This document shows, one piece after another, positions 1,109-38,204 of a DNA stretch of 64,000 nucleotides (position 1 is its first letter; the number at the start of each line of letters is the position of its first letter). This DNA comes from Macrostomum lignano (Eukaryota), in the NCBI GenBank assembly GCA_002269645.1, contig NIVC01000301.1, positions 160,372 through 224,371 of the forward strand, given 5' to 3'. The notes under the pieces were generated by a model. That model had not been told where the DNA came from, searched no databases, and saw only the letters and a program-made list of their open reading frames with translations. Position numbers and translations under genes: made by a program.

Positions 1109-4100
1109 TCATAAGATGGTGGCCCCGGACCGAGGCCTCAGGCCGCCCTTCCAGGCCGGGTCCTCGTCCTCCGGCCCGCCGCCGCCTCCCCAGCTCCGGC
1201 CGTCTACCAGGCGATCCCGGATAGCCGCCAGCTGCCTGCGAAATCGGCGCACTTTCTCGATGACCTCCTCCTGCATCAGCTTGAAGCACATGGCGAACAC
1301 GGACAGCCCGATGGCCACGTAACAGACCGTGGCGACCAGCTTCTCCTTCGGGTTCTCGCTGTCCACTTTGGTGCCTGGATTGGCAGGGGTGTCAGGGGTG
1401 CTGACGGCACGGCACGGGGCTTTTGCAGGACTGAAGAGTCTGAAGCTTATCTGAGGAGTCTGAAGCTTATCTGAGGAGTCTGAAGCTTATCTGAGGAGTC
1501 TGAAGCTTATCTGAGGAGTCTGAAGCTTATCTGAGGAGTCTGAAGCTTATCTGAGGAGTCTGAAGCTTATCTGAGGAGTCTGAAGCTTATCTGAGCAGTC
1601 TGAAGCTTATCTGAGCAGTCTGAAGCTTATCTGAGCAGTCTGAAGCTTATCTGAGGAGTCTGAAGCTTATCTGAGGAGTCTGAAGCTTATCTGAGGAGTC
1701 TGATGCTTATCTGAGGAGTGTGAAGCTTATCTGAGGAGTCTGAAGCTTATCTGAGGAGTCTGAAGCTTATCTGAGGAGTCTGAAGCTTATCTGAGGAGTC
1801 TGAAGCTTATCTGAGGAGTCTGAAGCTTATCTGAGGAGTCTGAAGCTTATCTGAGGAGTCTGAAGCTTATCTGAGGAGTCTGAAGCTTATCTGAGGAGTC
1901 TGAAGCTTATCTAAGAAGTCTGAAGCTCAAAGTAGAAACCTGGGGCTTTCGAGCGCATCTGAAGTATCTGAAGTTCATACTCGGGAGGAACCTGAGGCAT
2001 GTCTAAAATAAATTACACTTGAAACATTTCTACGAAATTTGCTGCTTAATAAAGAATTCCTTAGCTTTCAGCAAAACCCGAAGCAACTTAGGCTCGGCTC
2101 ACCTGGCACAATATCGCCGAACCCGATCGTACTCAGCGTCACAAAGCAGAAGTAAGACCATTTCACGTAGTCTTTGTCCTCCCAGATCGTGAAGATGAGC
2201 GCCCCGAATATGATGTACAGCACCATCACCGACAGGGACAGGAACAGCGGCACGGTGATCTGCCGCAGCGCCAGGCCCTGCATCGAGTCTTTGTCGTCGT
2301 CGTCTTCATCTGGCCGCGGCGGCGGAGTCGCCAGATAGCTGGAGAGGCCGCCAGAGGTGCTCTCGTGCACGCTGATGTAACTGCAGCGGCGCAGCATGGG
2401 GTTCGAATCCCGCTTGAACTCGTCCGCGGACAGCAGCGACGTGTCCGACTCGCCCGACGATGCTGAGGACGACGACGTCGACCAATCATCGGAGAGTCGG
2501 CGGCGAATTCTGCGACGGCGGCGAGACGGCGGCTGCAGGCTACGCCAGGACGGTGGATCGGAGCGGCGTGGCGATGCGGACTCAGGTGCGGCGTCGGGGG
2601 CGGCGCCGGCAGAGGTTGGCGGCACCTTCAGCCGGGCTGTCGGCAGAGTTGGCTGTTCGGATCGGACTCGCCGGAGCTGCCGTCGCCGGTTTCCCGCGGC
2701 GGCGCTAGCGCAAGCAGCGGTGGTTGCTGAGTTGGCCGGCTGCAGCTCCCGGTCGATGTCCGCCCAGTCAACCACGGGCACCGCGCGCAGCTCCTCGCTA
2801 GTCCACTCTCGAATCGGCCGCTGTGAGATAGGCGTCAGCACTTCGGCGTTCCAGCTTTCTTCGTCGGCTGCCGCTGACGCGGTGGTGGCGGCAGCGGCAG
2901 CAGAAGCTGCCCTCTCGGCAGCGAGCAGGGAATCAACGCCCGGCAGCTGCAGCGGGGCGGGCCGGGCCGGCAGGATGCGAGCCACCACGTAGGCAACACG
3001 GATGGAGGCGCCGCTGCCCGGGGACGGCAGCTGCTGGAGCAAAGGTGGAGGAGGGGGCGGAGACGACTGGGGCGGCAGTGGCTCCTGCAGCGCCGACCAG
3101 CCGAGCAGCGGGCGCATCTCGGGCGAGGTTGTCTCCAAGGTCGGCGACGAAGCAGCCGCCGCTGCTGATGCCGTCAACCCAACTGCCGCTTCGTCGTCTT
3201 CATCGTCTTCCTCATCCTCGACGCTTGCGGTGGATCGACAGACGGTCGTGAGGGCGGCACTGATCGCCGTCCAGGCCAGTCGGAACGGCGCCGTTGCCCA
3301 GCGCCGGCCAGACACGAGGCACGCGTGGACCCGGCGCCGGGTTCGCCGGCGGAAGACGCGGCGCCAGGCGGGGCGCAGCAGGTCCCGGTAGAGCAGCCGG
3401 AAGCCGTCGGCCAGGTAGTCGCCAACGCTGTTGAGGTAAAGGAACACCATGGGGATGCCGAAGAAAGCGTACAGCATGGTGAGCAGGTAGCCGGTTGATG
3501 TCTTCGGCACGACCTGGCCGTAGCCTGCGGGATTGCGAGGATGAGAGAGATGAGCACATGGTGTGTCTTCTAATGTGCTGGAACGAATGTACCAGTATGT
3601 GCCAATTGTGTGATTGGCAAGCAGTCTACACTCTATGCAGTCAAAACCAACCGACGCACCGATAGTGGTGATGACAGTCACCACGTACAGCAGCGCGCCG
3701 GAGAAGCTCCAGTTCCACTCGTCATCCAGGCGGCCGTTCCAGCCATGCACGTTGACGTAGACCACCAGGTCGCGGCTGAACTCCATCAGCCGGGCGGCCA
3801 GCGCTGCCCGCAGGCCGGCCGAGGCCGTCGCGTTCGCCAGCAGACGCCGGCAGGTCTCGTTCAGACAGACCCGATCGGCGATCGCCTCCGCCATCTCGGC
3901 GCTGACGTTGTCGACGGCCTGTTCGAATCGGAGACGGACATCCTGGCGGATGGCCTCCTCCTGCGGCAGCTCCAGCCGGCGGAAGACCATCCCGCCCAGC
4001 ACGGTGTACGCCACGATGGCGCCGAAGAGGCCCAGATTGGAGAAGGCGAATGCCAGGAAGCGTTTGCAGCAACTCAGAGCCTCTCGCGCTCGGCGCTTCC

Positions 4101-4398
4101 TGCGGAGCCGCTGCAGCTGCTGGCGCCGCTGCGACTTGGTCTGGCGGGCCAACCGGTTGGCGCCGCCGACGCCGCCGCCTCCGCGGTACACTGGCAGAAT
4201 GCTCCGTCCACCGTCATGCGGCTGCCATCGCTGCCGGCGGCTCCAGAGCGTCAGACGCCGATGCTGCCGCAGGTAGTGCCGCGCCTGCTGCGGCTGCGGC
4301 TGTGGCGGGGTGCCGTCAGAGTCGATGGACAGCGAGTTGATGACTCCCCGACTGGCCGCCGCTCTGGAGTTGGACGAGTTGGCGGCGGCGGTGTACAT
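1109..4398 (-). CDS. Two-pore-domain (K2P/TWiK-type) potassium channel; exons 4398-3660, 3524-2103, 1374-1109
   Basis: P1 (FSGALLYVVTVITTIG|YG) is split by a GT-AG intron at 3659-3525. P2 (WSYFCFVTLSTIGFGDIVPG) is followed by intron 2102-1375 and an M4 exon (KLVATVCYVAIGLSVFAMCFKLMQEEV). Both junctions are phase 1 and keep the frame. Confidence 0.92.
1436..1927. repeat. 20-bp minisatellite (GAGTCTGAAGCTTATCTGAG)n, ~24 copies, inside K2P intron 2
   Basis: Near-perfect tandem copies read directly. Confidence 0.97.
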
Positions 4399-5505: not shown

Positions 5506-5868
5506 TAGCAAAATGCGCAAGATGTACAGACGATGAAGACTAAGCCGAAACTACTCGTACAATAGTTTTTTCATTCTCTTGACCCAGGGACAGCCGAATA
5601 CTAAATAAAAATATTTACATGCCCCTGTTTCGAGGTTTTGCAAAAAGTTTGGCAGGAGTTGCAGAAGGATGCTCGGAAAGATCGGTTCATTTTCGATTCA
5701 ACTGTCGCCAACGTAGAATGGCAGAATGAAACAACCAATGAGGAGAGTTTGATGAGGACGGTTGCACACGTTGGACGTTTGCAGGTGGGGATATAAAGGA
5801 GATAAGGCTAGAAAGATGTGAGATGTGAGATTATCAGATAAATATCCCAGTCCATTAACTGCATCAGC

Positions 5869-6490
5869 ATGATTTCTTATTGCAAATTGCTTTTAGGAGT
5901 TCAGTTCATCTTGGCAAATCTGCTGAGCATCGAAGCTGCCGCATCATTCGAGTTGTGTGAGCTGTGAGCTGTGTGAGTTGTGTGACCTAATGCAACCTGT
6001 GCGAGTTTTGTAACCGAGTGCAGTGTAGCACCAGCTGCGCTCACCAGTAGCACCCACTCTGCGCGTGGAGTCCTGGAACTGGGCCGACCAGCTATTCACC
6101 ACCGAGTACGAGTCATTCCAGGTAAACGGGCTGGCAACTAACTACTCTATGGACTACAGCATCAGAGTGGCCTCGGGCACGAACTCCAGCAACGCGTCCG
6201 GCTTCGAGCCGTTCTTCGACAGCTCCGGCCGGCCCTTCTCCACCCTGGACGTGGACAACGACCTTGAAGAGACACAGTCGGTGTCCCAGGCCGCTGCCGG
6301 AGGGGCTGGCTGGTGGTTCACTTTTCTCATCAGCGTATACCTGAACCCCAACGGTCTCTACCCGCCTCCTGACAAGCGGATCTGCATCGAAGCAGCCTCC
6401 GACTTTAAGTTTATGCACTGGTACCTGAACAACGGCACCGGCTGCGGCCGGGTCGCCGTGAAGGCCATCCGAATGATGTTGACAGTGTGA
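5869..6490 (+). CDS. Internally deleted FReD paralogue: signal exon 5869-5956 plus the C-terminal half of the fibrinogen domain (6048/6051-6490); possibly a pseudogene
   Basis: Exon 1 matches 17542-17629 (88 bp, GT donor). 6051-6490 matches ~19103-19540 (FSTLDVDND, GWWF). The ~1.4 kb carrying the PAN exon and the N-terminal FBG exon in copy 2 is absent. Confidence 0.7.
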
Positions 6491-7429
6491 ACTTCCAGCT
6501 GATGGCAGCAAACTGGCTGGATAGATACTCAGAGTAGCCATCTTGGTGATTTTTTTGTCATTTTTGCTGAACTTTTCTTAAAAATTTCTTCTGTTCATCT
6601 GCAATCGTCTCTGTTTACTCCGTTTTCTCTCCCTCTGACCAGTTCAGTCTTGTCATTCTTATCTCTTCCTCGCTGTCTTCTGATTGGCTCCTCAACCTCG
6701 CCTCTTTCCCCAGTCCTGCACTCCACCCCTCACCCCTCCTTTTCTTATCTGCACTTAACCTCCTTTAATTTAAGGTCTTAATTCTAATTAAAAATAGTTA
6801 TCTTATTTTTTATTACATTAAACTAGAGGGGGGCTAAGTGCCAGAGAAAAGTAGGATTGAAGTGCGCAACTGAGAAAAGAGGCGAGATTGAAGAGCCAAT
6901 CAGAAGGCAGTGAGGGAGAGAGATAAGAATATAACAAGACTGAACTGGATAGGCACGGAGAGAAAACACAGTAAACAGAGAGACGAGTGAGTGCAGATGA
7001 ACGTTTCTTCTAAAAATAGCATGCCTATCCGCCTTTAACCCACCTCTAGGCTGTTGCGTGTACATTTGCATTATGTACATTTTTCTATTTTTACAGATTC
7101 TATAAAAATTTTACTTCTAGCTCGTAATTCTTTAAGCAACGGTAACGACATATTGAAAAATGCACGCAAAAGCTGGATTTAAAACTACTTTTCTGAAAAT
7201 AAACTATACTTATGAGCTCTTCTTAGCGTGCGACACTAATTAATTTTTTTTGATTTTCACGCACTCTGCTTTGGGTCTGAAGCCCAGAAGTTCCTTAGGC
7301 AAAAAGCGTCGCCTAGCCTCTTTGAAGACACTGATTCAATATTCTTCAAGCCTGCATATTTGTTGAGCCCCGTTGAAGGCATCCATACTCAGACTTGAGA
7401 CTTGGATAGTAAACAAGATTTATTGATTT

Positions 7430-9627
7430 AGTGCCCCAAAGCAAAACACGAACACGCGATGTTGGCGAAAGCGAAAACAGTAACGAGGCCTCCAAAGCCG
7501 AAGCAACAATGGGAAAGCGCGCGAAAGAAATAAAATCAAAGGAAACGGAACATAGAAAAGCTGATGCCAACGTCAAACGAGAGATCCCACACCTCTAGCA
7601 AACACGACGGAAGCTGCCAAGCCCTGCTGCGACTGCGGGAGATATCGCTGCACTGAGTCGCTCTTCCAGTCACCGATCCGCATGATGTCGGGCACCGGCA
7701 CACCCAACACCGAGGCCCAGGTCGCGCCGCCACGGCGGAGGCTGTGGGCTGAGAAGTGCTCACGCCTGAAGCCCGCAGCCCCTAGCTTGTCCGCTAGGAA
7801 GCAATCGAGTTGCCTGCCCGTCAGCAGCCGCTGGTTGCCTCCGGCGTCGCGATAAGTGAACAGAGGCGCATCAGCCGATTGCAGATTATTGAATCTTGCG
7901 TGCTGCTCGATTGCTAACACCGGGCACAGCGACGTCCGCCTCACTAGCCTTCGTAGAAGCACCTGGTGCACCCGCTCTTTGAACTGGAGAGTCTTCCCTT
8001 GCTCCAGGCGCAAGATCAAACCTCGCGGGTGTCGAAAGATGTCAGCGCAGCGCACACGTGCCGGACCTTTTCCCGAAGTCGGCAGCACGCTGGATTTTCG
8101 AAGCATGCCCCACCAACAGCAGATGGTGACTGCCCAGCATGCCAGCTGAAGCCCGTCAGAACGACTGACTCGCTGATGAATCTCCGGCAACATGAGCGGC
8201 GATACTGGTCGTTTTCTCGACACCCGAAGTCCCAGCTCTCGCTTGGCGCCTCGCAGGAGGAGAGTCGTGGCGGCATGCTTTGTCAGATCTGGTGCAGAGT
8301 TGACGCGAAACCATACGGACAGCGAGCTGGCGACAGAAGCAACGCTGCCGTACGCACGCAAACGCGTCCCGACTAGGCTGGCCAGGAAGTCAAGCAGGCT
8401 GTTCAGAGGACAGGATACAGGACTGCAGCGGGTCTGCCTGCAGTAAGCTAGCCACTCACGGATGTGCCTTGCTACCGCCTGCCTCGACCGTGGTGCATAG
8501 GAGACGCCTAGCAGCGACGCGGCCCGGCGGCTGAGAGAGTCTGAGAGAGTCTGAGAGAGGATGAAGAAAGTGGGCAGAGGCAGGGCAGAAAGCATGTCGA
8601 TGCATTGATTGCAAAGCAAACGGGCACAAGTTGCCATAGCAGCGAAATAAAAAATTAATCAACTGACTGCGCTCGTGCAACCGAGACGCTGCATAGGCGA
8701 GAATTTGAAACTCTCCTGGCACATGAAAGGCTCGCACACTCAGACCATGCCGTAAAGACATCAACGCAATCGTTTGCAGTAACCTCTGCACGACAGGACA
8801 CCTCGAAGTGCCATTATTGATAATATGACAGGCCGCCATGTTGCCACAATAAACGCTAACGTTGCAGCCTTTCAGCTCTTCCCTCCAGCGCAGGATTGAC
8901 AGCAGAGACAGGACTCGATCGCCACATGGTTCTTGAGAACAGGCCAGAGCTCCACCCACCGGGCCGACTCCAGCGCCACAATCCACCAGCTCAATTGGTC
9001 ACAGAGCTGTAAGCTGACTTTAATTCTCTCGTCAGGCCGCATAGCGTTGCACACTTCGATCAGATCACGCAAAAAAGTTTTTCCTTTGCGAATCACCTGT
9101 GCTGCCCAGCCAAGCTTGCCGATCAAGCGTTGCAAAGCCCGCTTGCTGATCCTGGTTTTGCTCCTTTCAGTTGCTAACAACTCAGCGAGGTTCCTCGCCT
9201 TCTCCTCGGGCAGCCTCTTGATGCCGGCCACTGTATCGAACTCGACACCAAGGAAGGTCATGCGCTGAGTTGGTGTCTGACACTTTGCCCAGTTTACAGT
9301 GAAGCCCAGCCGCGTCAACAGGCCTGTCAGCTCGTCGTAAAACCGCTGGCATTCGTCCCGCGAGCCCGCGAAGGCAAAATCGTCCAGGTAGGACTCGGTG
9401 CCCACAAAGCCTCTGCGCACCATCATTAAACGCACAGCATTGCTAAGATGGTGAAAACAGGTAACAGAAGCTGCAGCGCCGAACGGCAAACGGGTGTCAT
9501 ACATGTAGGTGGCTGCCTTGGACTCACCGAAGCGGAACTTGATCCCTGTCCGGCTGAAATCATCGGGGTGAACACCACAGGCGCGCTACGCTTCGCTGAG
9601 ATCCACCTTAGTCATAAAGCAGCCTAC
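7430..9627 (-). mobile_element. 5'-truncated tyrosine-recombinase retrotransposon (DIRS/Ngaro group): RT, RNase H, YR
   Basis: RT motifs TKVDLSEA*R, RLPFGAAAS and SYLDDF (9625-8872). DIRS-type RNase H INNGTS...HVPG...AASRL (to 8456). Overlapping YR ORF. No methyltransferase seen. Confidence 0.9.
7573..8637 (-). CDS. Tyrosine recombinase of the DIRS/Ngaro element
   Basis: Open ORF with GMLRKSS (catalytic R), KT.QFK, LCPV, HSLRRGGATWA, GDWKSDSVQRY. Confidence 0.88.
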   Translation of the reverse strand: MATCARLLCNQCIDMLSALPLPTFFILSQTLSDSLSRRAASLLGVSYAPRSRQAVARHIREWLAYCRQTRCSPVSCPLNSLLDFLASLVGTRLRAYGSVASVASSLSVWFRVNSAPDLTKHAATTLLLRGAKRELGLRVSRKRPVSPLMLPEIHQRVSRSDGLQLACWAVTICCWWGMLRKSSVLPTSGKGPARVRCADIFRHPRGLILRLEQGKTLQFKERVHQVLLRRLVRRTSLCPVLAIEQHARFNNLQSADAPLFTYRDAGGNQRLLTGRQLDCFLADKLGAAGFRREHFSAHSLRRGGATWASVLGVPVPDIMRIGDWKSDSVQRYLPQSQQGLAASVVFARGVGSLV

Positions 9628-10114
9628 AGGTCTATTGTTGACTGGTTCTTCGGTTGCATTGTGCTTCTTTGAGTAGCTAGTCAACATTGTCACTGTTTAA
9701 TCTCGGCTTCTTAAATCTCTGTTTTATTCCTGAATATCGGGTTTCCAGCTGCTGCTGCATGCTGGCGGTGGGGTTGTATGCTATTTTACTAGACTTGGTC
9801 AAAATATGCGGCCAAAATATGCAGCTCAGCTGTCACATACTCGTACTACACAGGCTACCATTATTCCACTTCGCCACATACGAAGCAAATTTAAAATGGA
9901 ATTTATAATTAATTGACCGACCCCACCAAACGAGTAGTCTAATAAGTAGTTTGGTTTTCTGCAATTCTGCACGTTGAATCCAAAAGGCATTGCATATCCG
10001 ATTTTCTCGATATTGCAGCTTGCAGAAACGGGCAGGCTGGCAAAGTTGGCAGAAATCCAGGAAATAAAAAAATACAAAAACAATGCAAAGTTAGGTGAAG
10101 ATCAAACAATATAG

Positions 10115-10120
10115 TTTATT
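10115..10120 (-). terminator. Polyadenylation signal AATAAA of Arg-rich gene copy 1
   Basis: TTTATT on the + strand, 70 nt beyond the TAA at 10190; conserved in copy 2 near 22524. Confidence 0.65.
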
Positions 10121-10189
10121 TCAAACACCCATTAAAGAAGGGTCACAAAACCGAATCGTATTGATGTTTTAGAAGGTGAAAAAGTCCAT

Positions 10190-13100
10190 TTAACCACGTC
10201 TGGCGGCACGTCTAAGGTTGCGTCTGGCGCGTCTGGCACGACGACCACCTCTTCTCACATCGCGGCTTCTGCGGGCACGTCTTGCAGCGCGTCTACGGAT
10301 GCTTCTGGAGCGTCTGACACGACGACCACCTCTTCTCACATCGCGGCTTCTGCGGGCACGTCTTGCAGCGCGTCTACGGATGCGTCTGGCGCGTCTGGCA
10401 CGACGACCACCTCTTCTCACATCGCGGCTTCTGCGGGCACGTCTGGCGGCGCGTCTACGGATGCGTCTGGCGCGTCTGGCACGACGACCACCTCTTCTCA
10501 CATCGCGGCTTCTGCGGGCACGTCTTGCAGCGCGTCTACGGATGCGTCTGGCGCGTCTGGAAATGCGTCTACGGATGCGACTGGCGCGTCTGACACGACG
10601 ACCACCTCTTCTCACATCGCGGCTTCTGCGGACACGTCTTGCAGCGCGTCTACGGATGCGTCTGGCGCGTCTGGCACGACGACCACCTCTTCTCACATCG
10701 CGGCTTCTGCGGGCACGTCTTGCAGCGCGTCTACGGATGCGTCTGGCGCGTCTGGCACGACGACCACCTCTTCTCACATCGCGGCTTCTGCGGGCACGTC
10801 TGGCGGCGCGTCTACGGATGCGTCTGGCGCGTCTGGCACGACGACCACCTCTTCTCACATCGCGGCTTCTGCGGGCACGTCTTGCAGCGCGTCTACGGAT
10901 GCGTCTGGCGCGTCTGGAAATGCGTCTACGGATGCGACTGGCGCGTCTGACACGACGACCACCTCTTCTCACATCGCGGCTTCTGCGGGCACGTCTTGCA
11001 GCGCGTCTACGGATGCGTCTGGCGCGTCTGGCAATGCGTCTACGGATGCGTCTGGCGCGTCTGGCACGACGACCACCTCTTCTCACATCGCGGCTTCTGC
11101 GGGCACGTCTGGCGGCGCGTCTACGGATGCGTCTGGCGCGTCTGGCACGACGACCACCTCTTCTCACATCGCGGCTTCTGCGGGCACGTCTTGCGGCGCG
11201 TCTACGGATGCTTCTGGAGCGTCTGACACGACGACCACCTCTTCTCACATCGCGGCTTCTGCGGGCACGTCTTGCAGCGCGTCTACGGATGCTTCTGGAG
11301 CGTCTGACACGACGACCACCTCTTCTCACATCGCGGCTTCTGCGGGCACGTCTTGCAGCGCGTCTACGGATGCTTCTGGAGCGTCTGGCACGACGACCAC
11401 CTCTTCTCACATCGCGGCTTCTGCGGGAACGTCTGGCGGCGCGTCTACGGATGCGTCTGGCGCGTCTGGCACGACGACCACCTCTTCTCACATCGCGGCT
11501 TCTGCGGGCACGTCTTGCAGCGCGTCTACGGATGCGTCTGGCGCGTCTGGAAATGCGTCTACGGATGCGACTGGCGCGTCTGACACGACGACCACCTCTT
11601 CTCACATCGCGGCTTCTGCGGGCACGTCTTGCAGCGCGTCTACGGATGCGTCTGGCGCGTCTGGCAATGCGTCTACGGATGCGTCTGGCGCGTCTGGCAC
11701 GACGACCACCTCTTCTCACATCGCGGCTTCTGCGGGCACGTCTGGCGGCGCGTCTACGGATGCGTCTGGCGCGTCTGACACGACGACCACCTCTTCTCAC
11801 ATCGCGGCTTCTGCGGGCACGTCTTGCAGCGCGTCTACGGATGCTTCTGGAGCGTCTGACACGACGACCACCTCTTCTCACATCGCGGCTTCTGCGGGCA
11901 CGTCTTGCAGCGCGTCTACGGATGCTTCTGGAGCGTCTGACACGACGACCACCTCTTCTCACATCGCGGCTTCTGCGGGCACGTCTTGCAGCGCGTCTAC
12001 GGATGCGTCTGGCGCGTCTGGCACGACGACCACCTCTTCTCACATCGCGGCTTCTGCGGGCACGTCTTGCAGCGCGTCTACGGATGCGTCTGGCGCGTCT
12101 GGCAATGCGTCTACGGATGCGTCTGGCGCGTCTGGCACGACGACCACCTCTTCTCACATCGCGGCTTCTGCGGGCACGTCTGGCGGCGCGTCTACGGATG
12201 CGTCTGGCGCGTCTGGCACGACGACCACCTCTTCTCACATCGCGGCTTCTGCGGGCACGTCTTGCAGCGCGTCTACGGATGCGTCTGGCGCGTCTGGAAA
12301 TGCGTCTACGGATGCGACTGGCGCGTCTGACACGACGACCACCTCTTCTCACATCGCGGCTTCTGCGGGCACGTCTTGCAGCGCGTCTACGGATGCTTCT
12401 GGCGCGTCTGGCACGACGACCACCTCTTCTCACATCGCGGCTTCTGCGGGCACGTCTGGCGGCGCGTCTACGGATGCGTCTGGCGCGTCTGGCACGACGA
12501 CCACCTCTTCTCACATCGCGGCTTCTGCGGGCACGTCTTGCAGCGCGTCTACGGATGCGTCTGGCGCGTCTGGCACGACGACCACCTCTTCTCACATCGC
12601 GGCTTCTGCGGGCACGTCTTGCAGCGCGTCTACGGATGCTTCTGGCGCGTCTGGCACGACGACCACCTCTTCTTACATCGCGGCTTCTGCGGGCACGTCT
12701 GGCGGCGCGTCTACGGATGCGTCTGGCGCGTCTGGCACGACGACCACCTCTTCTCACATCGCGGCTTCTGCGGGCACGTCTTGCAGCGCGTCTACGGATG
12801 CTTCTGGAGCGTCTGACACGACGACCACCTCTTCTCACATCGCGGCTTCTGCGGGCACGTCTTGCAGCGCGTCTACGGATGCGTCTGGCGCGTCTGGCAC
12901 GACGACCACCTCTTCTCACATCGCGGCTTCTGCGGGCACGTCTGGCGGCGCGTCTACGGATGCGTCTGGCGCGTCTGACACGACGACCACCTCTTCTCAC
13001 ATCGCGGCTTCTGCGGGCACGTCTTGCAGCGCGTCTACGGATGCGTCTGGCGCGTCTGGCACGACGACCACCTCTTCTCACATCGCGGCTTCTGCGGGCA

Positions 13101-13948
13101 CGTCTGGCGGCGCGTCTACGGATGCGTCTGGCGCGTCTGGCACGACGACCACCTCTTCTCACATCGCGGCTTCTGCGGGCACGTCTTGCAGCGCGTCTAC
13201 GGATGCGTCTGGCGCGTCTGGCACGACGACCACCTCTTCTCACATCGCGGCTTCTGCGGGCACGTCTGGCGGCGCGTCTAAGGTTGCGTCTGGCGCGTCT
13301 GGCACGACGACCACCTCTTCTCACATCGCGGCTTCTGCGGGCACGTCTTGCAGCGCGTCTAAGGTTGCGTCTGGCGCGTCTAACACGACGACCACCTCTT
13401 CTCACATCGCGGCTTCTGCGGGAACGTCTTGCAGCGCGTCTAAGGTTGCGTCTCGCGCGTCTGACACGACGACCACCTCTTCTCACATCGCGGCTTCTGC
13501 GGGCACGTCTTGCAGCGCGTCTACGGATGCGTCTGGCGCGTCTGGCACGACGACCACCTCTTCTCACATCGCGGCTTCTGCGGGCACGTCTGGCGGCGCG
13601 TCGGTTCTGCCGCCTGGATTGGCGGCGACTCCGCCTCTCGCTTCTTCTGTCCCTTCTTTCCTCTGCGTTCCTCCTTGGCGGTCTTCTGCAAGGCTTCTGA
13701 GCCATAGCGGGCTTCTTAGCGGATCCAGCGATGGCCGCAGCGTTAGCGGCTGCTGGCTTCTTCAGCTTATTCTTCGCATTCGGTGGTGGCGCTGAGAGCT
13801 GAAAATTGCAAATGATTTTCGTAATTATTCAAAATTGAAGCTGCCATTAGTGCTACATACGTACGAGCGTAGTTATGTGCAACTGAATTGAACTTACCAC
13901 TAGCGTGCAAAGCAGCGCGGCGCAAGCTGCCAACAGAATGAGTCTCAT
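10190..13948 (-). CDS. Secreted Arg-rich tandem-repeat protein, copy 1 (1219 aa); exons 13948-13898 and 13798-10190
   Basis: Exon 1 encodes MRLILLAACAALLCTLV with a GTAAGT donor; 99-bp intron ending TTTTCAG; exon 2 joins in phase 0 as LSAPPPNAKNKLKKPAAAN...AMAQKPCRR, in frame with the listed 1171-aa ORF. Repeat variants are often synonymous in this frame (GCT GCA vs GCC GCC). Confidence 0.85.
10195..13600 (-). repeat. Coding 81-bp tandem repeat (ARRSRDVRRGGRRARRARRIRRRAARR), roughly 40 units, with occasional 30-bp inserts
   Basis: Read directly; every length variant is a multiple of 3. Confidence 0.97.
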
Positions 13949-14989
13949 GTTTGAGCTGCTTGGGAGCTGACTGGATTGAATTTCGGAAGCCCCAAAACGG
14001 ACCTACTTTTATGCTGTTGTTGAGTTTGACACCCCCGCGGGTGGCCGTTTCTTCACCTGCCGGATGGCAACTGCTGAGCTGACAGACTGTCGAATTTTTT
14101 ACATTTGTTTGCACGCTGCTTCGCACTGGAAGTTCGGGCGGCTTGAATGCCGTTCATTTTTCGAAAATTTTGTTTGTTTTGTTCGACTCTGCTGACTGGT
14201 GCAAAAGAATTCTCAAGAACGAAATAATTCTCCCTACTCTCAAGACATTACGGCCTTGTCGTTTTGGTGACTTTTGCTGTGCTGAGCAAACACGGGCCTG
14301 AAGTGGCGCTTGTTTGACAGCAGAATCTGCAGGTGCGACTCCTCAAACATGCGAAAAGTTGCTAAGGCGATCGATTTTGACTAAGAGTTTTTTGCGACTC
14401 AAACGTTCATGCTCACACTGAAGAGTAAATTGCAAGAAACCACTTTTGCAATTCGATGATTAAGAATTTTGGTTGACGTCACCACTGCATTCAAAATATC
14501 TTTGTATCCTTGATGCGAGAGCTCTCATAATGCCGTTGCGGGTAGGGATTTTTCAGGCCAGTGACTGACTGATGCCGTGGGTGACGAAAACTGTAAAAGG
14601 TTTATCAAGTAGCTCACACCAGTGTGGCAGATTATTAAATTCCCCAGATTATGATTCCTGATAGTAATGTATGCCTGTGTTCCTTTACCACTGCGGTTCT
14701 TGCCGCCTCTCGACCTCTTCGTCAGGGGTGAGGCGGCTAGAACGATCCGGCGTCTACTAGTGTCCGGCGTCAAATTCCTCTACATGAGGGCACCTGCTAA
14801 GCGAAACCTCGTCACGTCATAGCGACCTGTGCCTCAACATTCTCAATGAGTGCCAGGCCAATTGCGTCTTCACCGATGGCATTGCCTCAACGCTCAATCT
14901 GAGACAACGCAATCAGTAGCTATCAATTAGTAGCTATCGACCCGCACGATACCATCAATTACCACTGAAACCCTGTTGAGCTCCACTGC

Positions 14990-15439: not shown

Positions 15440-17338
15440 ACTGCCACCATGACTATCTCAGGTCACGGCTGTTTTTTCAGGCACCAGTACACACCAGTAA
15501 TCCAGCACTTCGCGTTCACACTGCACTACCGCAAAGGCGACGACAACCCGGCAGACCCGCTGAGCCGCAATCCGCTGCCAAGCGCATCGTTGCACAAAGA
15601 CGAGGCTGAGGACACCAGACTGTGCAACGCCGTTGTCCAAGCGGCCACCCCGAAGGGCCTGACCATCGACAGGATCCGGGCTGCGACCGAGAGAGACCCA
15701 GCTCTGGTGGTCATGCGCGTCATGCCCGCCTTGGCAACAGAAAACTGGAGCTGCGGCGCGGCGCGGCGAGTCCTGCGCACAGTTTTCGGTCCCTCAAAGC
15801 CGAACTGAGCGTTCACGCAGGCCTTCTGCTCCGGGGAAACAGAATCGTGATCCCGGCGGAACTTCAGCAGCTGACGATCGGTTTAGCGCACCAGGGCCAC
15901 CTCGGACAGAAAAAGACGTGCGACCGACTGCAGCGTAAGGTCTGGTGGCCTGGCATGACCAAGCAGGTCGAGGCGGTCGTCACTAACTTCTCCGGTGCCA
16001 AGCGGCCCGGACTGACGGCGCCGTTAAATAACCGCCGATGCAGCCGACTCCGCTTCCGTCGGGGGCCTGGCAATCGCTCAGCGTCGATGTGTGCGGACCA
16101 TTCCTACGGGCGAGAACGTAGTGGTCTTGGTGGACTACTTCAGCCGCTACCCGGACCTCTACGTGGTGCGAAGCCTCACCAGCGCCAGCGTCATCAACTG
16201 CGTCATGGCCTCATTCAGCCGCTTCGGGGTGCCGCAGCAGATCACTACGGACAACGCCACCTACTTTACGAGCGAGGAATTCAGTGTGTTTCTGGACGGC
16301 CTCGGGGTTCGACAGCGCAGGGTCACCCCGCTCTACCCGGCGGCGAACGGCGAGGTGGAGCGCTTTAACCGCAGCCTCAACAAGGCCATCAACGCGGCCA
16401 CAGCCGACGGCAAGGACTGGCGGCGTGGCGGCGGGCGATTCACGAGTGGCTTCTCGGATACCGTAACTCCGTGCACCGAGGCACCGACCGCACGCCCAAC
16501 GATCTCATGTTTAACCGAGAGACCGGCGGCATCCTGCCATCCGGCCTGACAAAGCAAACCGGCAGCTCCGGACGGCAGCTCCAGCGCCACGAGTGCGGCT
16601 ACAAGCAGGCGATGCGCAAGGCGGCCGACACGCGGCGATCGGCTGCGCCACACGGCATCCTGGCAGGCGCCCGCGTGCTGCTCAGAAACCGCGGCAAGGC
16701 CAAGCTGCGCTGTCCGTTCGACCCGCGGCCTTGGCTTGTCAGGGCAGTCAGCGGCGACGCCCTGACTCTGCAACGCGGCACGGCAGTCATCCGGCGGCAT
16801 GTGACCGAGACGAAGCCGCTGCGTGAGTGCCCCTGGGACCTTGACGAGCTGGACGGCGATCAGCGGCCGGGGGCGCCGGCGACGGAGGTAAATCCGGCCA
16901 ACGACGGCCCGATTGCACAGAGGCCTCATCCCAGAACAGCAAAGCGGCCCGTCTGCTACAAGCAGTGACTTGATTCGAACTGAGCCGCAACGCTGTCTAA
17001 GATCGGCAAGCTTTGATTACTTAAGTATTTAACCGTTCAAAATCAAAAGTTTTGCTACTGCTTTACTAATTAATTTTTTTAATCGTTTCTCGTCAATTTT
17101 CGCAATGAAATTTCAAAACCTCTCGTATTGGACTTTTCTTTTGCTTTGGGGGAGAGATGTGGTGCGCAGCCTATGCGTGTACAATGCCCTTTCTCTTGCT
17201 CTCTAGCCAACATGCTCAGCACCCCAATGTATTACGTAACTCATAGCTGCACGTCGGCAGCTGCGTGAATATATATCGCAAATATACGGCTCTTAGAGGC
17301 CAAGATTCTTACCCGCCAAGCGGACTACGAGCACTACA
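15440..17338 (+). mobile_element. 3' part of a Gypsy-type LTR retrotransposon (RNase H end, integrase, PPT, 3' LTR); frameshifted
   Basis: YRKGDDNPADPLSR; HQGHLG...VWWPGM zinc-binding region; VDYFSRY...TDNATYF...NGEVERFNR rve core; polypurine tract GGGGGAGAGA before TGT. Confidence 0.9.
17158..17338 (+). repeat. 3' LTR (181 bp, TG...CA)
   Basis: Starts TGTGG immediately after the PPT and ends ACTACA exactly where homology to duplication copy 1 begins. Confidence 0.75.
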
Positions 17339-17541
17339 GTTGCAGAAGGATGCTTGGAAAGATCGCTTCATTTTCGATTCAACTGTCGCCAGGGTGGAAT
17401 GGCAGAATGAAACAACCAATGAGGAGAGTTTGATGACGATTTTTGTACACTCAGGTGGGGATATATAGGAGCTAAGGCTAGAAAGATGTGAGGCAAATTT
17501 ATCAGATTAATGCAATGCCCCAGTCCATTAACTGCATCAGC

Positions 17542-19540
17542 ATGATTTCTTATTGCAAATTGCTTTTAGGAGTTCAATTTATCTTGGCAAATCCGCTGAG
17601 CATCGAAGCTGCCACATCATTCGATTTGTGTAAGTTTTTAGAGTTGTGCGAGTTTTGTCACCGAGTGCAGTGTAGCACCAGCTTCCAGAGCAGAACTAGT
17701 GATTCTCTTTGATTTCAGACAGCCGAGCGGCTGCGCCAGGGTCGCCGGCTATTGAGGTGAGCCGAGCGCCGTCGCAGAGCGCCATCGAGTGCTCGGCCCA
17801 ATGCAGCTGCGCTGGGCTGACCTGCAGATCGGCGCTGTTCCTGCCGGCCAACGGAGTCTGCCTGATGTCGGAGCAGCCTGCGACGGATTTTTCCGGCGTT
17901 GTTGGAGGCGCGGCCGGCAGGCCATTCGTGAAGTCCACCACAGGTTCTTCTGCTTCGGGTAAGTGCGAGTGTTTGACCTTGACTGCCAGCTGAGCAGTGC
18001 ATTGAAATGCCAAAGCGGAAAACTCCCCAACGAACTCAACAGTCCCTGGTAACATCACGGTCAGCGTCGGTGGCCGGAAGTTCCGCGTGATTCAACAGCG
18101 AGTTGATGACAGCGTGAGCTTCGCCCGGACCTGGGCCGAGTACGAGGCCGGCTTCGGGGACAGCAACAACTTCTGGATCGGTGAGCGCTCGCCGAACCAT
18201 CTTGTAGGCAAGCGCGAGCTTTACCTACGGACTGATAGCTGAGTGATGGTGTGCAAAGCTGATTGAGGGTATGCAAAGCTGAGTGAGAGAATGCGCAGCG
18301 AAGCGGAAGGCCTAGCTACTGTTGTACCCCCCGGGATGGCCTCGGGAGTTGCAAATCCGGCTAGGGTAGCCGGGGCTGCCTAGCTGGGGGACAACAGGTC
18401 CCGCATACGCCTGTCCCTAACGCTGCGAAAGTTCACAGTAGCCTCCGGCTGGCGAAACTTCACTTGCCGGCCCCTAAACACTGCGAGAGTTCACAGTCGT
18501 CCCGATCCCCACGCGGCACCCCAGAAGAGGAAAACACTCACACCGGTAGTTCGGGCGGACTCCAACAACGCGTCGAGTAAAACGCGTACCGAATGTCACG
18601 TGTTTATTATTACTCTACTGCACTGCCGCCAGCAGGCCAAGGTAGGGGGGGGGTAGAGACGGGAGGGAGGAAAGCAAGGAAAGTAAGGGAGGAGGGTAAA
18701 CCGATAGACAATAATCAAGTACACACCCTGCTGGCCAGCCAATCACAAGCCACCAGCCGGGGAGCGTGGAGCAAACTTGAGCCGGCCTGCGCACGAGACC
18801 AAGGGGCCCGGGCAGGCAGTAGGCCAGACTAGGGTGAGGCTTAGGCCCCCAAACCCCAGCCCGACTGGCCGGCCCAACCCAGCGCAAGGGGGTGGGAGAG
18901 AAAAATAATGGAAAGAAAATGCCCAGTGGGTGGAGCCCTCGCTGACGCAACACGGCACAACACTACATAAGTGTCCGAATACCGTACACCTGGCCGGTTC
19001 CAGAGGAACAGTGTAAATAAATTCAAGGCTCCGATCCTCACTGAACTGCCATCACTGAAATCCTCAGGCCTGGCCGCCATCCACAACCTGACTAAGGCGA
19101 TACCCACCCTGCGCGTGGAGTCCTGGAACTGGGCCGACCAGCTATTCACCACCGAGTACGAGTCGTTCCAGGTGAACGGCCCGGCAACCAACTACTCTAT
19201 GGACTACAGCATCAGAGTGGCCTCGGGCACGAACTCCAGCAACGCGTCCGGCTTCGAGCCGTTCTTCGACAGCTCCGGCCGGCCCTTCTCCACCCTGGAC
19301 GTGGACAACGACCTTGAAGAGACACAGTCGGTATCCCAGGCCGCTGCCGGAGGGGCTGGCTGGTGGTTCACTTTTCTCATCAGCGTATACCTGAACCCCA
19401 ACGGTCTCTACCCGCCTCCTGACAAGCGGATCTGCATCGAAGCCGCCTCCGACTTTAAGTTTATGCACTGGTACCTGAACAACGGCACCGGCTGCGGCCG
19501 GGTCGCCGTGAAGGCCATCCGAATGATGGTGACAGTGTGA
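17542..19540 (+). CDS. Secreted PAN/apple-like plus fibrinogen C-terminal domain protein (FReD); exons 17542-17629, 17719-17958, ~18043-18180, 19068-19540
   Basis: Signal-like N-terminus; SAIECSAQCSCAGLTCRSALF...CLM (PAN-like Cys spacing); VIQQRVDDSVSFARTWAEYEAGFGDSNNFWIG|LAAIHNLT; FSTLDVDND; GWWF. All introns are GT-AG phase 1. The exon 3 acceptor is uncertain. Confidence 0.85.
18301..18960. other. Unclassified GC-rich sequence in FReD intron 3, probably a repeat insertion
   Basis: Composition differs from its flanks; internal direct repeat CTGCGA[A/G]AGTTCACAGT; no recognisable protein. Confidence 0.35.
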
Positions 19541-20254
19541 ACTCCCAGCTGATGGCAGCAAACTGGCTGGATAGATACTCAGAGTAGCCATCTTGGTGAT
19601 TTTTTTGTCATTTTTGCTGAACTTTTCTTAAAAATTTCTTCTGTTCATCTGCAATCGTCTCTGTTTACTCCGTTTTCTCTCCCTCTGACCAGTTCAGTCT
19701 TGTCATTCTTATCTCTTCCTCGCTGTCTTCTGATTGGCTGCTCAACCTCGCCTCTTTCCTCAGTCGTGCACTCCACCCCTCACCCCTCCTTCTCTTATCT
19801 GCACTTAACCTCCTTTAATTTAAGGTCTTAATTCTAATTAAAAATAGTTATCTGATTTTTTATTACATTAAACTAGAGGGGGGCTAAGTGCCAGAGAAAA
19901 GTAGGATTGAAGTGCGCAACTGAGAAAAGAGGCGAGATTGAAGAGCCAATCAGAAGGCAGTGAGGGAGAGAGATAAGAATATAACAAGACTGAACTGGAT
20001 AGGCACGGAGAGAAAACACACAGTAAACAGAGAGACGAGTGAGTGCAGATGAACGTTTGTTCTAAAAATAGCATGCCTATCCGCCTTTAACCCACCTCTA
20101 GGCTGTTGCGTGTACATTTGCATTATGTACATTTTTCTATTTTACAGATTCTATAAAAATTTTACTTCTAGCTCGTAATTCTTTAAGCAACGGTAACGAC
20201 ATATTGAAAAATGCACGCTGGATTTAAAACTACTTTTCTGCAAATTAAACTATG

Positions 20255-21516
20255 CTCAGCAACAGTCAAAAGTTCTACCCCTATCGCGCCTAGTCAGAGA
20301 TAACTTCTCGCTCACAATTCAACCCGCGAGTTTCGCAACTACGCCGCGAGGAGGGTGATTGAATCAATAATAAACGCCAGTCGCACAAAATCACAAGTTT
20401 ATTTTTATGCAATATGCAGTTAGAATCGCAATGCTTAATACCGCGTGTGGGATCCACTCGCACGCAGAAGAGCGGCGACTCTGCGGGGCATCCCCAAGAT
20501 GAGGCGACGCAGAAAGTCCCGGGGAAGTTGCTGCCAAGCGTTTGCAATGGCGTGACGTAGCAGTTGCAGTTGCCAACTCCTCCGAAAGCAGCGTCGGCAA
20601 ACGGTAGGAACCGAGTCTGCAGAAGATCTGCGTAGCTATTAGCGTTCACGTTGGCATCCAGGAAGACGATATTCGTCCTGGCTCTCAGCGCACTGTACAT
20701 TCTGCTGCAGCATCTCCTGCCGCGGTTCTCGCCAAACGCGGGTGCGACCATCTGCTTGGAAAAGTCGGAACCGGCTCTCGTCAGTGAAAACAACGCGTCG
20801 CCACTGCTGCTACCTCCAGTGGACGCGCTGCATCGCCGACTGCTCTCGGCTGGCGATGTGGGCAGGACTGAGTCGAGGCCGCTTGCGCATCTTGCGAGAG
20901 CGGAGGCTACCTCCCGAATTCGAAGTCGAACTGTTTGGGCGCTCAGGATATTTCCTGCTCTGGGAAACCCCACATCAGACGGAGCAGGGTGGCTGGCAGG
21001 GTGGGAGTTCGCCTTAATATTCGCAGCAGACGGCGATTTGCTCTGGCTGTTGAGCCACGGAGATCAAGGCGCTGTTGTGTTCTAATTGACACAGAGAGTT
21101 TCGTTTGATTAAAGCTTTTGAGCTCAGAGATACACATCTCGCTCACAATATTAAATATTTTATATAAATATCTTTATATATTTATAGAGATCAAACTCCT
21201 ACTTGCACGTTGCAATCTCCTACTCATTCATGTCTGAGTACAGTACGAGCGTATACGCCCACGCATTCAATAAGGCCAATAGTTCATTGTCAGTAGTCAA
21301 TTCATTGCGCGAGCATTGTCAATCACAACAGGCGCTGACTGCCTTTCGCAGCGTGCTCCACGCTGCCAGTCTCACGGGACTTTGTCAGCAGTTTTAGAAT
21401 TGCCGCTCGCGATCTTCCAAATCTGCGAGCAACTTCTCTGATGGACACACCGACTTCCAGCATTCCAACAGCACGCCATCGTTCAGCATTAATCATTTGC
21501 CGGACTATTTTTGAAA

Positions 21517-21558
<42 letters not shown>

Positions 21559-21734
21559 ATTAAACTGAACATTTGTCCTTTTAAAGTTACGCAGTCTTGT
21601 ACCATTATACAGACCCAAGCCCCCCCCCCCCCAAGTGACAATAAGCTTCGCTGCGTGCCGCAACTTGAGTCAGTCATAATAGGTGAGAAAAATTCCATCT
21701 CGCTTGGAGGGTGGAACTTTTGACTGTTGCTGAG
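20255..21734 (-). mobile_element. Tc1-family DNA transposon with decayed, internally deleted transposase
   Basis: TIR CTCAGCAACAGTCAAAAGTTC at both ends. Minus-strand WRRVVFTDESRFRLFQADGRTRVWRE and C-terminal LILGMPRRVAALLRASGSHTRY*. Absent from copy 1, whose empty site reads AACTATACTT. Confidence 0.9.
21519..21556. repeat. (GT)19 microsatellite inside the Tc1 element
   Basis: Read directly. Confidence 0.95.
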
Positions 21735-22597
21735 TATTGCTGAGTTGCTGAGTTATAAGCTCTTCTTAGCGTGCGACACTAATTAATTTGTCTGGATCTT
21801 CACGCACTCTGCTTTGGGCCTGAAGCCCAGAAGTTCCTGAGGCAAAAAGCGTCGCCTAGCCTCTTTGAAGACACTGATTCAATATTCTTCAAGCCCGCGT
21901 ATTTGTTGAGCCCCGTTGAAGGAATCCATACTACTCAGACTTGAGACTTCGATAGTAAACAAGCTTTATTGATTCTGCACTAGCCAGTATTTGGCGAGAT
22001 GTTGGGAATTTGCTGACTGCAAACTGAAATGCTTGCTCAGGTCTATTGTTGACTGGTTCTTCGGTTGCATTGTGCTTCTTTGAGTAGCTAGTCAACATTG
22101 TCACTGTTTAATCTCGGCTTCTTAAATCTCTGTTTTATTCCTGAATATCGGGTTTCCAACTGCTGCTGCAGGCTGGCTGTAGAGTTGTATGCTATTTTAC
22201 TAGACTTGGTCAAAATATGCGGCCAAAATATGCAGCTCAGCTGTCATATAATCGTACTACACAGGCTACCATTATTCCACTTCGCCACATACGAAGCAAA
22301 TTTAAATGTAATTTAGAATCAATTGACCGACCGCACCAAACGAGTGGTCTAATAAGTAGTTTGGTTTTCTGCAATTCTGCACGTTGAATCAAAAAGGCAT
22401 TGCATATCCGATTTTCTCGATATTGCAGCTTGCAGAAACGGGCAGGCTGGCAAAGGCGGCAGAAATCCAGGAAATAAAAATACGAAAACAATGCAAATTT
22501 AGGTGAAGATCAAACAATATAGTTTATTTCAAACACCCATTAAAGAAGGGTCACAAAACCGAATCGTATTAATGTTTTAGAAGGTGAAACAATCCAT

Positions 22598-25336: not shown

Positions 25337-26789
25337 GTTTGAGCTGTTTGGGAGCTGACTGGATTGAATTTCGGAAGCCCCAAAACGGACCTACTTTTAT
25401 GCTGTTGTTGAGCTTGACACCCCGCGGGTGGCCGTTTCTTCACCTGCCGGATGGCAACTGCTGAGCTGGCAGACTGTCAGATTTTTTAAATTTGTTTGCA
25501 CGCTGCTTCGCACTGGAAATTCGTGCGGCTTGAATGCCGTTCATTTTTAGACAATTTTGTTTGTTTTGTTCGACTCTGCTGACTGGTGCAAAATAATTCT
25601 CAAGAACGAAATAATTCTCCCTACTCTCAAGACATTACGGCCTTGTCGTTTTGGTGACTTTTGCTGTGCTGAGCAAACGCGGGCCTGAAGTGGCGCTTGT
25701 TTGACAGCAGAATCTGCAGGTGCAACTCCTCAAACATGCGAAAAGTTGCTAAGGCGATCGATTTTGACTAAGAGTTTTTTGCGACTCAAACGTTCATGCT
25801 CACACTGAAGAGTAAATTGCAAGAAACCACTTTTGCAATTCGATGATTAAGAATTTTGGTTGACGTCAGCACTGCATTCAAAATATCTTTGTATCCTTGA
25901 TGCGAGAGCTCTCATAATGCCGTTGCGGGTAGGGATTTTTCAGGCCAGTGACTGACTGATGCCGTGGGTGACGAAAACTGTAAAAGGTTTATCAAGTAGC
26001 TCACACCAGTGTGGCAGATTATTAAATTCCCCAGATTACGATTCCTGATAGTAATGTGTGCCTGTGTTCCTTTAGCACTGCGGTTCTTGCCGCCTCTCAA
26101 CCTCTTCGTCAGGGGTGAGGCGGCTGGAACGATCCGGCGTCTACTAGAACTCTCCTAATCAGAGTGCAACATAGCTGCTGTCGACACCGGGGGACCTCCC
26201 GGGACGGCGCAAACCCTTCGTCCATAGCGACGAATCGGCCGTTCAGGGATTAGCGGAATGGGCTTTCGTGCCTTGCCGCTGTGTCCCCTCCGGGACAGCC
26301 CTGCAGTTAAGTAAGTCAAGATGTATGCGTGGCTTCTTTGAGCACTGAGGATCTTGCCACAAGTAGATGTCCAGCTGAATTGCTGTGCAGGTCTGTTTTC
26401 AGACTGTAAAAAAATGATTTAAAAAGCTTTAATCCGCTAAAAGTTGAGTATCTGGTAGCAGTGAAATCGCTTTTGGGTTCACAAAACATTTTACCAATAT
26501 TCCATCCACCCTGTTACATACTACACAAATTACCATAGCGTTTGCGACGCAGGTTGCAGGAAGGAGCATCTGAGAAACATTGAAAAACTAGGATCAGTTC
26601 GGGTGGAAGAGCATAGTAGGTATTTCTTTGAATTCTGAATCCCGATATCGGTAAATCCTGAATGTAAACTCGGCTGTTCGGGACGAATCGAAACAATTTT
26701 TGTCTGTCAGAAGTTTCCTAATGATGAGTCTCCAGGTAGCCTGCAATCTTCTAAAATTGTCCAGAATGTAGCCGAATCCCGTAACTACT

Positions 26790-31940: not shown

Positions 31941-32235
31941 GTTACAACGCCATGCTATCAATCATTTATTTTGGCCATAGACATCCGCAGCATGCCGATG
32001 GGAGCCGAAAGGAAGCTCAGCTCCGGACAAAAACAACTGTCTGCAATCAACTAGAAACACTCCCACCCAGGTGTACTGTGATTAACTAATGCTTTGTGCT
32101 AACTTAAAGGCTAGAAGAGACCCTTTCTGCAAAAGCTAGGTCTTTAACTAATCAATTTGTTTCGAAAAAAGAAGAAAATCAGGCAAAACAGTGACGCTTC
32201 CGGAATTAATTCAATCAGAAAAGTTTCGGCCTTAA

Positions 32236-34690: not shown

Positions 34691-34697
34691 CTGGATG

Positions 34698-36219: not shown

Positions 36220-36288
36220 CTGGATATTTATCTGACAGCTGTCAAAACGGTGGCTGAAAAAGCGCGGGAGACACAGCCGCCCGCCGCC

Positions 36289-38143: not shown

Positions 38144-38204
38144 TGCTTGCGACTGCTTCTAAGTCTGAAAATAGTTCAGTTTTGTTGATATGTTTTTGAA
38201 GGGT

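Follow-up and report, generated by a model that had tools for sequence, protein, structure and literature searches.

Can a long tandem array of arginine (Arg) codons be part of a working gene, and if so, on which strand is it read and where would its product go? The question is raised by a 64,000-nucleotide (nt) stretch of contig NIVC01000301.1 (here called the window, all positions being counted from its first nucleotide) in GCA_002269645.1, which we take to be the Mlig_3_7 assembly of the flatworm Macrostomum lignano. The minus strand was read from 14300 to 9900 and translated, and it yields what is probably a real two-exon, protein-coding gene that has escaped annotation (NIVC01000301.1:170561-174319; copy A), with its start ATG at 13948 and a predicted product of 1,219 amino acids (aa). 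An earlier note on this DNA, made from the sequence alone, had described a 51-bp exon, a canonical 99-bp intron and a phase-0 join to LSAPPP, together with an internal ATG at 13705 and a downstream AATAAA. Sequence reading and translation bear out each of these, with the internal ATG as M49 and AATAAA at 10120-10115. The gene is made up as follows.

14006 to 14013, minus strand: TATA-like box CATAAAAG, ~60 nt upstream of the ATG, the same in the paralogue and presumed to function as one.
13898 to 13948, minus strand: coding part of exon 1, 51 nt (17 codons), encoding MRLILLAACAALLCTLV, with a signal-peptide-like n-region (MR) and then a hydrophobic core.
13799 to 13897, minus strand: intron of exactly 99 nt, GTAAGT…TTTTCAG, 3′ end TTTGCAATTTTCAG, phase 0.
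13604 to 13798, minus strand: unique 5′ part of exon 2 (residues 18-82), with LS/APPP at the predicted cleavage site, a Lys/Ala/Pro linker, the lone Cys54 and the mixed-charge segment RRNAEERRDRRSERRSRRQSRRQ.
10193 to 13603, minus strand: tandem array of 39 SRDV-anchored units, consensus SRDVRRGGRRARRARRIRRRAARRARR, 58% Arg.
10190 to 10192, minus strand: stop codon TAA, five codons past the last repeat unit (…RRNLRRAARRG, stop).
10115 to 10120, minus strand: poly(A) signal AATAAA, 69 nt past the stop codon, with a counterpart in the paralogue at 22528-22523.

The long open reading frame (ORF) can be reached from ATG 13948 by splicing alone, since a retained intron brings an in-frame stop after 31 codons; with the intron retained, the ORF could start only at the internal ATG 13705-13703. 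Splicing joins the exons in phase 0 at 13798 to give LSAPPP, and the 3.6-kb exon 2 begins LSAPPPNAKNKLKKPAAANAAAIAGSAKKPAMAQKPCRRPPRRNAEERRDRRSERRSRRQSRRQ. The hydrophobic core of exon 1 spans 15-16 residues, with a Kyte-Doolittle 10-residue mean that peaks at 2.94, and small residues stand at -3/-1 (V-L-S/A) of the cleavage site predicted by heuristics, which is followed by Ala-Pro-Pro-Pro. A scan of both strands of the 64 kb for mini-exons of this kind (ATG, 12-35 open codons and GT[AG]AGT) returned six matches, only two of which, at 13948 and 25336, contain a strongly hydrophobic core, and each of these lies directly upstream of an Arg-rich ORF. The signal-peptide-like mini-exon is no chance feature. 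A signal peptide on an exon of its own is a frequent arrangement.

The match at 25336 opens a tandem paralogue (copy B), and both copies lie within a segmental duplication.

22598 to 25336, minus strand: tandem paralogue B, with exon 1 at 25336-25286, intron at 25285-25187 and exon 2 from 25186.
5657 to 14760 (block A) and 17338 to 26147 (block B): segmental tandem duplication, found by self-BLAST and flank alignments, with shared unique parts 96-98% identical.

As had been claimed, exon 1 and the splice sites are identical in the two copies (51/51 nt in exon 1, the same donor and the same acceptor), and the intron differs by three substitutions, none of them in the splice sites. The support that copy B lends is nevertheless weaker than the earlier note had it, as a premature in-frame TAA at 24415-24413, which would cut the product to 274 aa, had gone unreported. 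This TAA stands where every other unit has AGA, which amounts to two adjacent base changes. Past it the Arg frame of copy B stays open for 601 further codons, to the TAA at 22600-22598, so the stop is recent; copy B may be a shortened variant or a duplicate in decay. Array B has 26 SRDV anchors, and the two arrays have been homogenised differently, A consisting mostly of …RRIRRRAARR… units and B mostly of …RRNLRRAARR… and 38-aa units. The duplication blocks are interrupted by retroelement fragments, one of which (7207-9627) is not common to copy B and was thus inserted or deleted after the duplication. Retroelement ORFs within the duplication, at 7573-9504 and 15622-16968, are tyrosine-recombinase-like, reverse transcriptase and integrase zinc-finger in type.

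Arg accounts for 675 of the 1,219 residues of the predicted precursor (55.4%), for 56.2% of the predicted mature chain and for 58.0% of the repeat region, and the ~59% first given for the protein applies to the canonical 27-aa unit only (16/27). Translation bears out the length, the lack of aromatics and the single Cys past the signal peptide: Phe, Trp, Tyr and His are absent from the whole product, and among three Cys only C54 lies past the hydrophobic segment. Lys occurs seven times in the protein and never in the repeats, Gly makes up 7%, and the residues that accompany Arg in the repeats are Ala/Gly/Ser/Val/Ile/Asp. The predicted mature chain is of ~150 kDa, with 674 Arg, a net charge of about +638 and no N-glycosylation sequon. 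It carries one positive charge per 1.8 residues, and the sole acidic residue of each unit is one Asp (in SRDV). Repeats take up 1,135 of the 1,219 aa. Their SRDV anchors number 39, where the earlier note had "roughly 40 units", and delimit 31 units of 81 nt/27 aa and seven of 114 nt/38 aa, all in frame; Tandem Repeats Finder gives a matching period of 81 nt. The Lys/Ala/Pro linker and the mixed-charge segment that had been noticed are both present in the unique part of exon 2. In composition the linker, KKPAAANAAAIAGSAKKPA (within 13604-13798, minus strand), recalls histone H1 C-terminal tails, a compositional echo only, with no family match. A single-sequence AlphaFold2 run gave one long helix across the Arg/Ala-rich part (predicted local distance difference test, pLDDT, >90), and the non-Arg residues recur with a period of 3.4 residues (p ~0.003 for that frequency; 0.047 after correction), which is suggestive only.

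The closest parallels come from flatworm adhesion. Mlig-ap1 of the same species is, as had been stated, multidomain (C-type lectin, vWD, C8, TIL, EGF) and has Lys/Arg-rich regions (KR-regions A-C, >3,600 aa, built of Lys/Arg/Gly repeats, for example SRKPRRKNRKSRKP); the protein occurs in adhesive footprints, its secreted KR-regions bind sugars of negative charge, and attachment is blocked by heparin (PMC6410801). The product predicted here shares with these regions the species, the extremely basic repeats and, if it is secreted, a likely interaction with negatively charged glycans, but it is domain-free and its unit is Lys-free. In Minona ileanae (Mile-ap3a/b) and Theama mediterranea (Tmed-ap3), the polycationic part is a protein of its own, ap3, in which a signal peptide precedes a Gly/Arg/Lys(/His/Ser) repeat that can reach 3,700 aa (PMC6745481, PMC9229212). 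Of the 3,700 residues of Tmed-ap3, which carries a signal peptide, 1051 are Lys and 880 are Arg (~52% basic; K 28%, R 24%, G 16%, H 12%; PMC9229212), and Mile-ap3 is similar (PMC6745481).

Like ap3, the predicted product would be a stand-alone flatworm protein in which a signal peptide (here predicted) precedes little but a polycationic repeat of low complexity and great length, devoid of globular domains (no Pfam match at E≤10) and with basic residues making up just over half of the chain (55-58% here). The electrostatic cohesive role proposed for the ap3 type, which polyanions reverse, may be counted as a further likeness. Unlike ap3, in which Lys is the commonest residue, Arg is the sole base of the repeats here and the unit is well defined (27/38 aa); in M. 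lignano, moreover, Gly/Arg/Lys (GRK) regions are reported as part of Mlig-ap1 and not as a separate gene. No similarity to ap3 or to the ap1 KR-regions was found among 1.84 billion representative proteins, a set in which the presence of ap3 is uncertain and a kind of sequence for which homology is unreliable owing to its low complexity. Because the Lys-rich GRK composition is lacking and homology is not detectable, we did not file the gene as an ap3 member.

Protamines are small (tens of residues) nuclear proteins without signal peptides. The repeats resemble them in Arg content (~58-59%), in the Ala/Ser/Gly/Val/Ile alongside, in the lack of aromatics, in the protamine-sized unit (27-38 aa) and in the RRGGRR motif, and the product differs from them in having 1,219 aa behind a hydrophobic, spliced first exon and in the lack of a Pfam protamine match. 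The Pc cement proteins of the sandcastle worm (Phragmatopoma), like those of other complex-coacervate adhesives, are secreted, repetitive and strongly basic as well, and pair with polyanions in secretory granules to give a condensed phase; they are small and Lys/His/Gly/Tyr-rich, with a polyphosphoserine partner, whereas here there is no Tyr/3,4-dihydroxyphenylalanine (DOPA) chemistry and no homology. The predicted product thus appears ap3-like in its manner of working and protamine-like in composition, yet would be a member of neither group. It is less novel than first thought, as secreted flatworm polycations of similar charge density have been described, and "undescribed" was too strong a word for it: a signal peptide followed by a polycationic repeat is the known ap3 design (PMC6745481, PMC9229212), and what appears not to have been described before is the Arg-only, domain-free version with a regular unit.

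We favour the reading that the gene encodes a secreted, polyanion-condensing polycation of a gland, and we put the whole chain of inference at roughly 45%; secretion of the product, taken by itself, is plausible and somewhat better than an even bet. The first exon would be a cleavable signal peptide, probably cut near VLS/A, after which the chain would enter the endoplasmic reticulum and be packed into the secretory granules of a gland cell. With one positive charge per 1.8 residues and one Asp per unit, it should bind any polyanion it meets. The Arg/Ala-rich repeats would bind and condense sulfated or carboxylated glycans, glycocalyx and possibly nucleic acid or polyphosphate, and, in the granule or after release, would form an electrostatic cohesive, coacervating or granule-packing matrix, in which the single Cys54 could allow disulfide-linked dimers. 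Adhesive, cement, rhabdite/mucus and prostate glands are all candidate sources, and the sequence decides for none of them. Such a role has already been put forward for the Lys/Arg-rich parts of Mlig-ap1 and, in other flatworms, for ap3 as a polycation in its own right.

A narrower form of this reading, which we hold only tentatively and regard as doubtful, is that M. lignano makes and releases, as a gland product in its own right, a natural guanidinium polycation: an almost Lys-free, near-polyarginine protein of 150 kDa with a net charge of about +640. Such a protein could condense polyanionic glycans into a cohesive or coacervate phase, and could possibly represent the type of "independent KR-rich protein" from which the ap1 flanks have been proposed to descend; it might instead, as a giant agent in seminal fluid or for defence, bind or penetrate the cells of a partner or of prey. 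If secreted, it would to our knowledge be the most Arg-dense secreted protein known.

Several results weigh against this reading. Whereas the minus-strand two-exon model, the signal-peptide-like exon and the extreme polycation of the earlier interpretation stand, the Arg frame is not the sole open frame. Across the array, stop codons are absent from three of the six frames, namely the Arg frame, a codon-aligned antisense frame and a second antisense frame, so ORF length is no evidence for any of them; the antisense frames are open mechanically, because the complements of Arg/Ala codons are never stop codons. The codon-aligned antisense frame (10136-13793, plus strand) is fully open, Ser/Ala/Thr/Gly-rich and mucin-like in look (ASGASGTTTTSSHIAASAGTS…), and its equivalent in array B (22544-25181, plus strand) is fully open too. 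The second is Leu/Arg-rich (MRLARLARRPPLLTSRLLR…; ORF 10299-13697, plus strand). In a codon-position test, the 19 distinct single-base repeat variants among the 63 units of both copies were classed per frame, and the ratio of non-synonymous to synonymous change (dN/dS-like) was 0.68 in the Arg frame (p = 0.28), 0.91 in the Ser/Thr antisense frame and 0.47 in the Leu/Arg antisense frame (p = 0.08). No frame has a significant synonymous excess, and the test permits no choice of strand. The premature TAA of copy B (24413-24415) breaks the Arg and the Leu/Arg antisense frames and leaves the Ser/Thr antisense frame intact, and all three coding differences between A and B (N61S, E64K, D68G), which fall in the mixed-charge segment, are non-synonymous and show no sign of constraint. 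As to secretion, the signal peptide is called by heuristics alone, and the flank past the hydrophobic core is more basic than the N-terminus, which would allow an N-out anchor or poor translocation. The predicted mature chain contains 146 overlapping R-x-[KR]-R motifs, which furin-type convertases could cut upon encounter. The helix prediction, made from the single sequence of a low-complexity protein, is weak evidence.

The lack of relatives counts in the same direction. The unique N-terminal 71 aa shared words with one candidate and matched none in a collection of 5.8 billion protein clusters. The first 126 aa had no match among 8,000 listed candidates, a list filled by Arg-rich words. HMMER found no homologue of the 1,171-aa ORF among the 1.84 billion representatives; there were 13 weak matches (best 35% identity, E = 1e-14), and the four that were inspected are unrelated repeat proteins. 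An exact look-up of ten candidate gene models and neighbouring ORFs found none on record, none of the three open frames matched a Pfam family at E≤10, and the N-terminal 155 aa of the Arg frame had no match in the PDB. As a control, the TEX47 cluster was seen to hold the NCBI/UniRef entry only, which indicates that M. lignano transcriptome assemblies are not in the searched collection, and the negative result thus means "not annotated, no known relative" and not "not expressed". The gene is an unannotated orphan in the searched protein collections. In the literature, a text search found the peptide string RSRDVRRGG in no paper, and the supplements of the Mlig-ap1 paper (PMC6410801) contain none of this gene's peptide motifs. 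The papers found describe no M. lignano protamine and hold nothing relevant on Arg-rich rhabdite proteins, and those on protamine-like proteins with a signal peptide concern hepatitis B virus only. A paper on a seminal-fluid screen gives no sequences.

With ORF length and codon positions silent, the minus strand is favoured because of its gene signals, that is, the signal-peptide-like mini-exon, the splice sites, the TATA-like box and the poly(A) signal. That the plus strand codes instead, for the mucin-like Ser/Ala/Thr/Gly repeat or for the Leu/Arg-rich one, would agree with the two antisense frames that are open across array A, with the Ser/Thr frame that is unbroken in copy B where the Arg frame has its stop, and with the lowest dN/dS-like ratio in the Leu/Arg frame, although at p = 0.08. 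We consider it highly improbable: the Ser/Thr frame has no Met in 1,219 codons, the Leu/Arg frame is broken in copy B as well, the openness is mechanical, neither frame has a Pfam match and the collection holds no such proteins. No AATAAA or ATTAAA lies on the plus strand within ~900 nt past the ends of its ORFs. A search for any ATG-started exon that could be spliced into either open frame found no plus-strand acceptor with a good polypyrimidine tract, and the weak first-exon candidates lack a hydrophobic N-terminus and lie mostly inside the retroelement that copy B does not share. The plus-strand gene models were rejected, having no good acceptor, no start exon with a strong donor and no hydrophobic N-terminus. 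It is unlikely that the gene is young or decaying, an 81-nt minisatellite having expanded in exon 2 of a small secreted-protein gene, with the Arg ORF an unselected by-product and its product absent, unstable or functionless. The uninformative ORF length, the lack of a significant synonymous excess, the stop already present in one copy, the three non-synonymous differences of the unique region, the satellites that fill the window, and the lack both of a homologue among the 1.84 billion representatives and of an entry in the M. lignano protein sets reached would all fit such an origin. What argues for selection on the frame is that each of the 63 units delimited by neighbouring SRDV anchors, copies A and B taken together, measures 81 or 114 nt, with no frame-breaking indel, while the A/B alignment of 1,470 nt of non-coding sequence has 2.9% substitutions and three indel events (1, 2 and 1 nt), none a multiple of 3. 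Uniform unit lengths could also arise without selection by in-register unequal crossing-over, and the maintenance of the frame is thus supportive and not decisive. The unique coding part has diverged less than the flanks (1.0% substitutions and 0 indels over 290 nt; three substitutions, or 1.3%, over the 239 nt from the start of exon 2 to the first SRDV anchor), the ORF ends cleanly five codons past the array and beside a poly(A) signal, and neither copy shows damage to its promoter, exon 1 or splice sites.

If the array does code on the minus strand, the product might still stay in the cell or be made only to be cut. A nucleic-acid binder, for instance an outsized sperm nuclear basic protein of protamine-like kind or a polyprotein built from protamine-sized units of 27/38 aa, translated from M49 or with a non-functional hydrophobic N-terminus, is suggested by a unit composition like that of fish-type protamines (~59% Arg, the rest Ala/Ser/Gly/Val/Ile, RRGGRR, no aromatics), by the resemblance of the linker to histone H1 tails, by the usable context of the internal ATG (GCTATGG) and, as weak evidence, by the testis/cilium genes TEX47 and DNAI3 in the same window. 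We judge it distinctly unlikely, given that both copies keep an in-frame hydrophobic first exon with canonical splice sites, that the product is more than 10 times the size of any protamine, that Pfam has no protamine or H1 match even at E≤10, and that the papers found describe no protamine of M. lignano; we also know of no protamine polyprotein. Tandem-repeat precursors of cationic peptides are a known design, as in apidaecin and Baramicin. A secreted polyprotein precursor that proprotein convertases or another protease cut into short cationic antimicrobial or membrane-active peptides would account for a signal-peptide-like exon before ~39 near-identical units, for the 146 R-x-[KR]-R motifs and for the exactly one Asp per unit (SRDV), which could mark the unit boundary. 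The motifs are, however, spread through the units and do not sit at their borders, so that a convertase with a carboxypeptidase would leave only di- and tripeptides, and the acidic spacer propeptides by which typical precursors neutralise their cargo are missing. In addition, the KR-regions of Mlig-ap1 outlast secretion intact enough for immunodetection (PMC6410801). Processing into peptides is accordingly very unlikely in our estimate, and a secreted polycation that acts as a whole chain is the reading that we retain.

The remaining ORFs of the window are metazoan or transposon-derived and include a two-pore K+ channel (K2P) domain, a piggyBac transposase, and reverse transcriptase and integrase fragments. 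The intact-looking piggyBac-type transposase ORF (603 aa; 51237-53048, minus strand) matches DDE_Tnp_1_7 (E = 1.7e-67) and has a C-terminal zinc finger. The 776-aa K2P ORF (2068-4398, minus strand; Ion_trans_2 match) lies in a region of 64% guanine and cytosine, has no exact entry in the collection and no match at the strict E≤1e-50, and may be an unannotated or mis-modelled gene; just before it in coordinates is a 20-bp tandem repeat (1431-1927). Between 26792 and 39217, a 12-kb stretch contains at least eight satellites with periods of 14, 16, 23, 24, 27 and 44 bp, including a 16-bp array (29153-30608) that recurs inverted at 35600-36218 and a 44-bp array (32235-32747) whose copies are 100% identical. 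Several of these satellites fall within the NCBI gene model for Translin (window ~34395-38158). The stretch 31002-51817 is 100% identical to a recorded locus of NIVC01000301.1, so that contig positions equal window positions plus 160371. The TEX47 ORF (41002-41817) is on record on two contigs of GCA_002269645.1: NIVC01000406.1:597434-618249 is colinear with 28666-51817 of the window (TEX47/DNAI3/Translin) and ~95% identical to it, with an identical TEX47 protein, consistent with the known duplicated genome of M. lignano. NIVC01000301.1 and NIVC01000406.1 differ in their gene models: Translin is modelled with 337 and 129 aa, respectively, and the WD40 gene with 588 and 947 aa.

The locus would thus be a 3.7-kb gene missed by annotation in the genome of a model organism, likely because short RNA-seq reads do not suffice to assemble its 81-nt repeats and because trypsin destroys the protein in proteomics. 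As repeat ORFs of Arg codons are open on both strands, gene signals and not ORF length must decide the strand, and the open Ser/Ala/Thr/Gly antisense frame is a trap for ORF-based annotation of such repeats. If the product is expressed and secreted, it would be a second, chemically distinct flatworm polycation, built on the guanidinium groups of Arg and not on Lys amines. Compared with amines, guanidinium groups bind sulfate, phosphate and carboxylate more strongly, and they do so in bidentate fashion. A protein of this kind would offer a new building block for bio-inspired adhesives, would bear on the problem of how so highly charged a chain (more than 600 positive charges, with 146 potential convertase sites) is translocated and stored by cells, and would bear on the electrostatic attach-and-release model of temporary adhesion.

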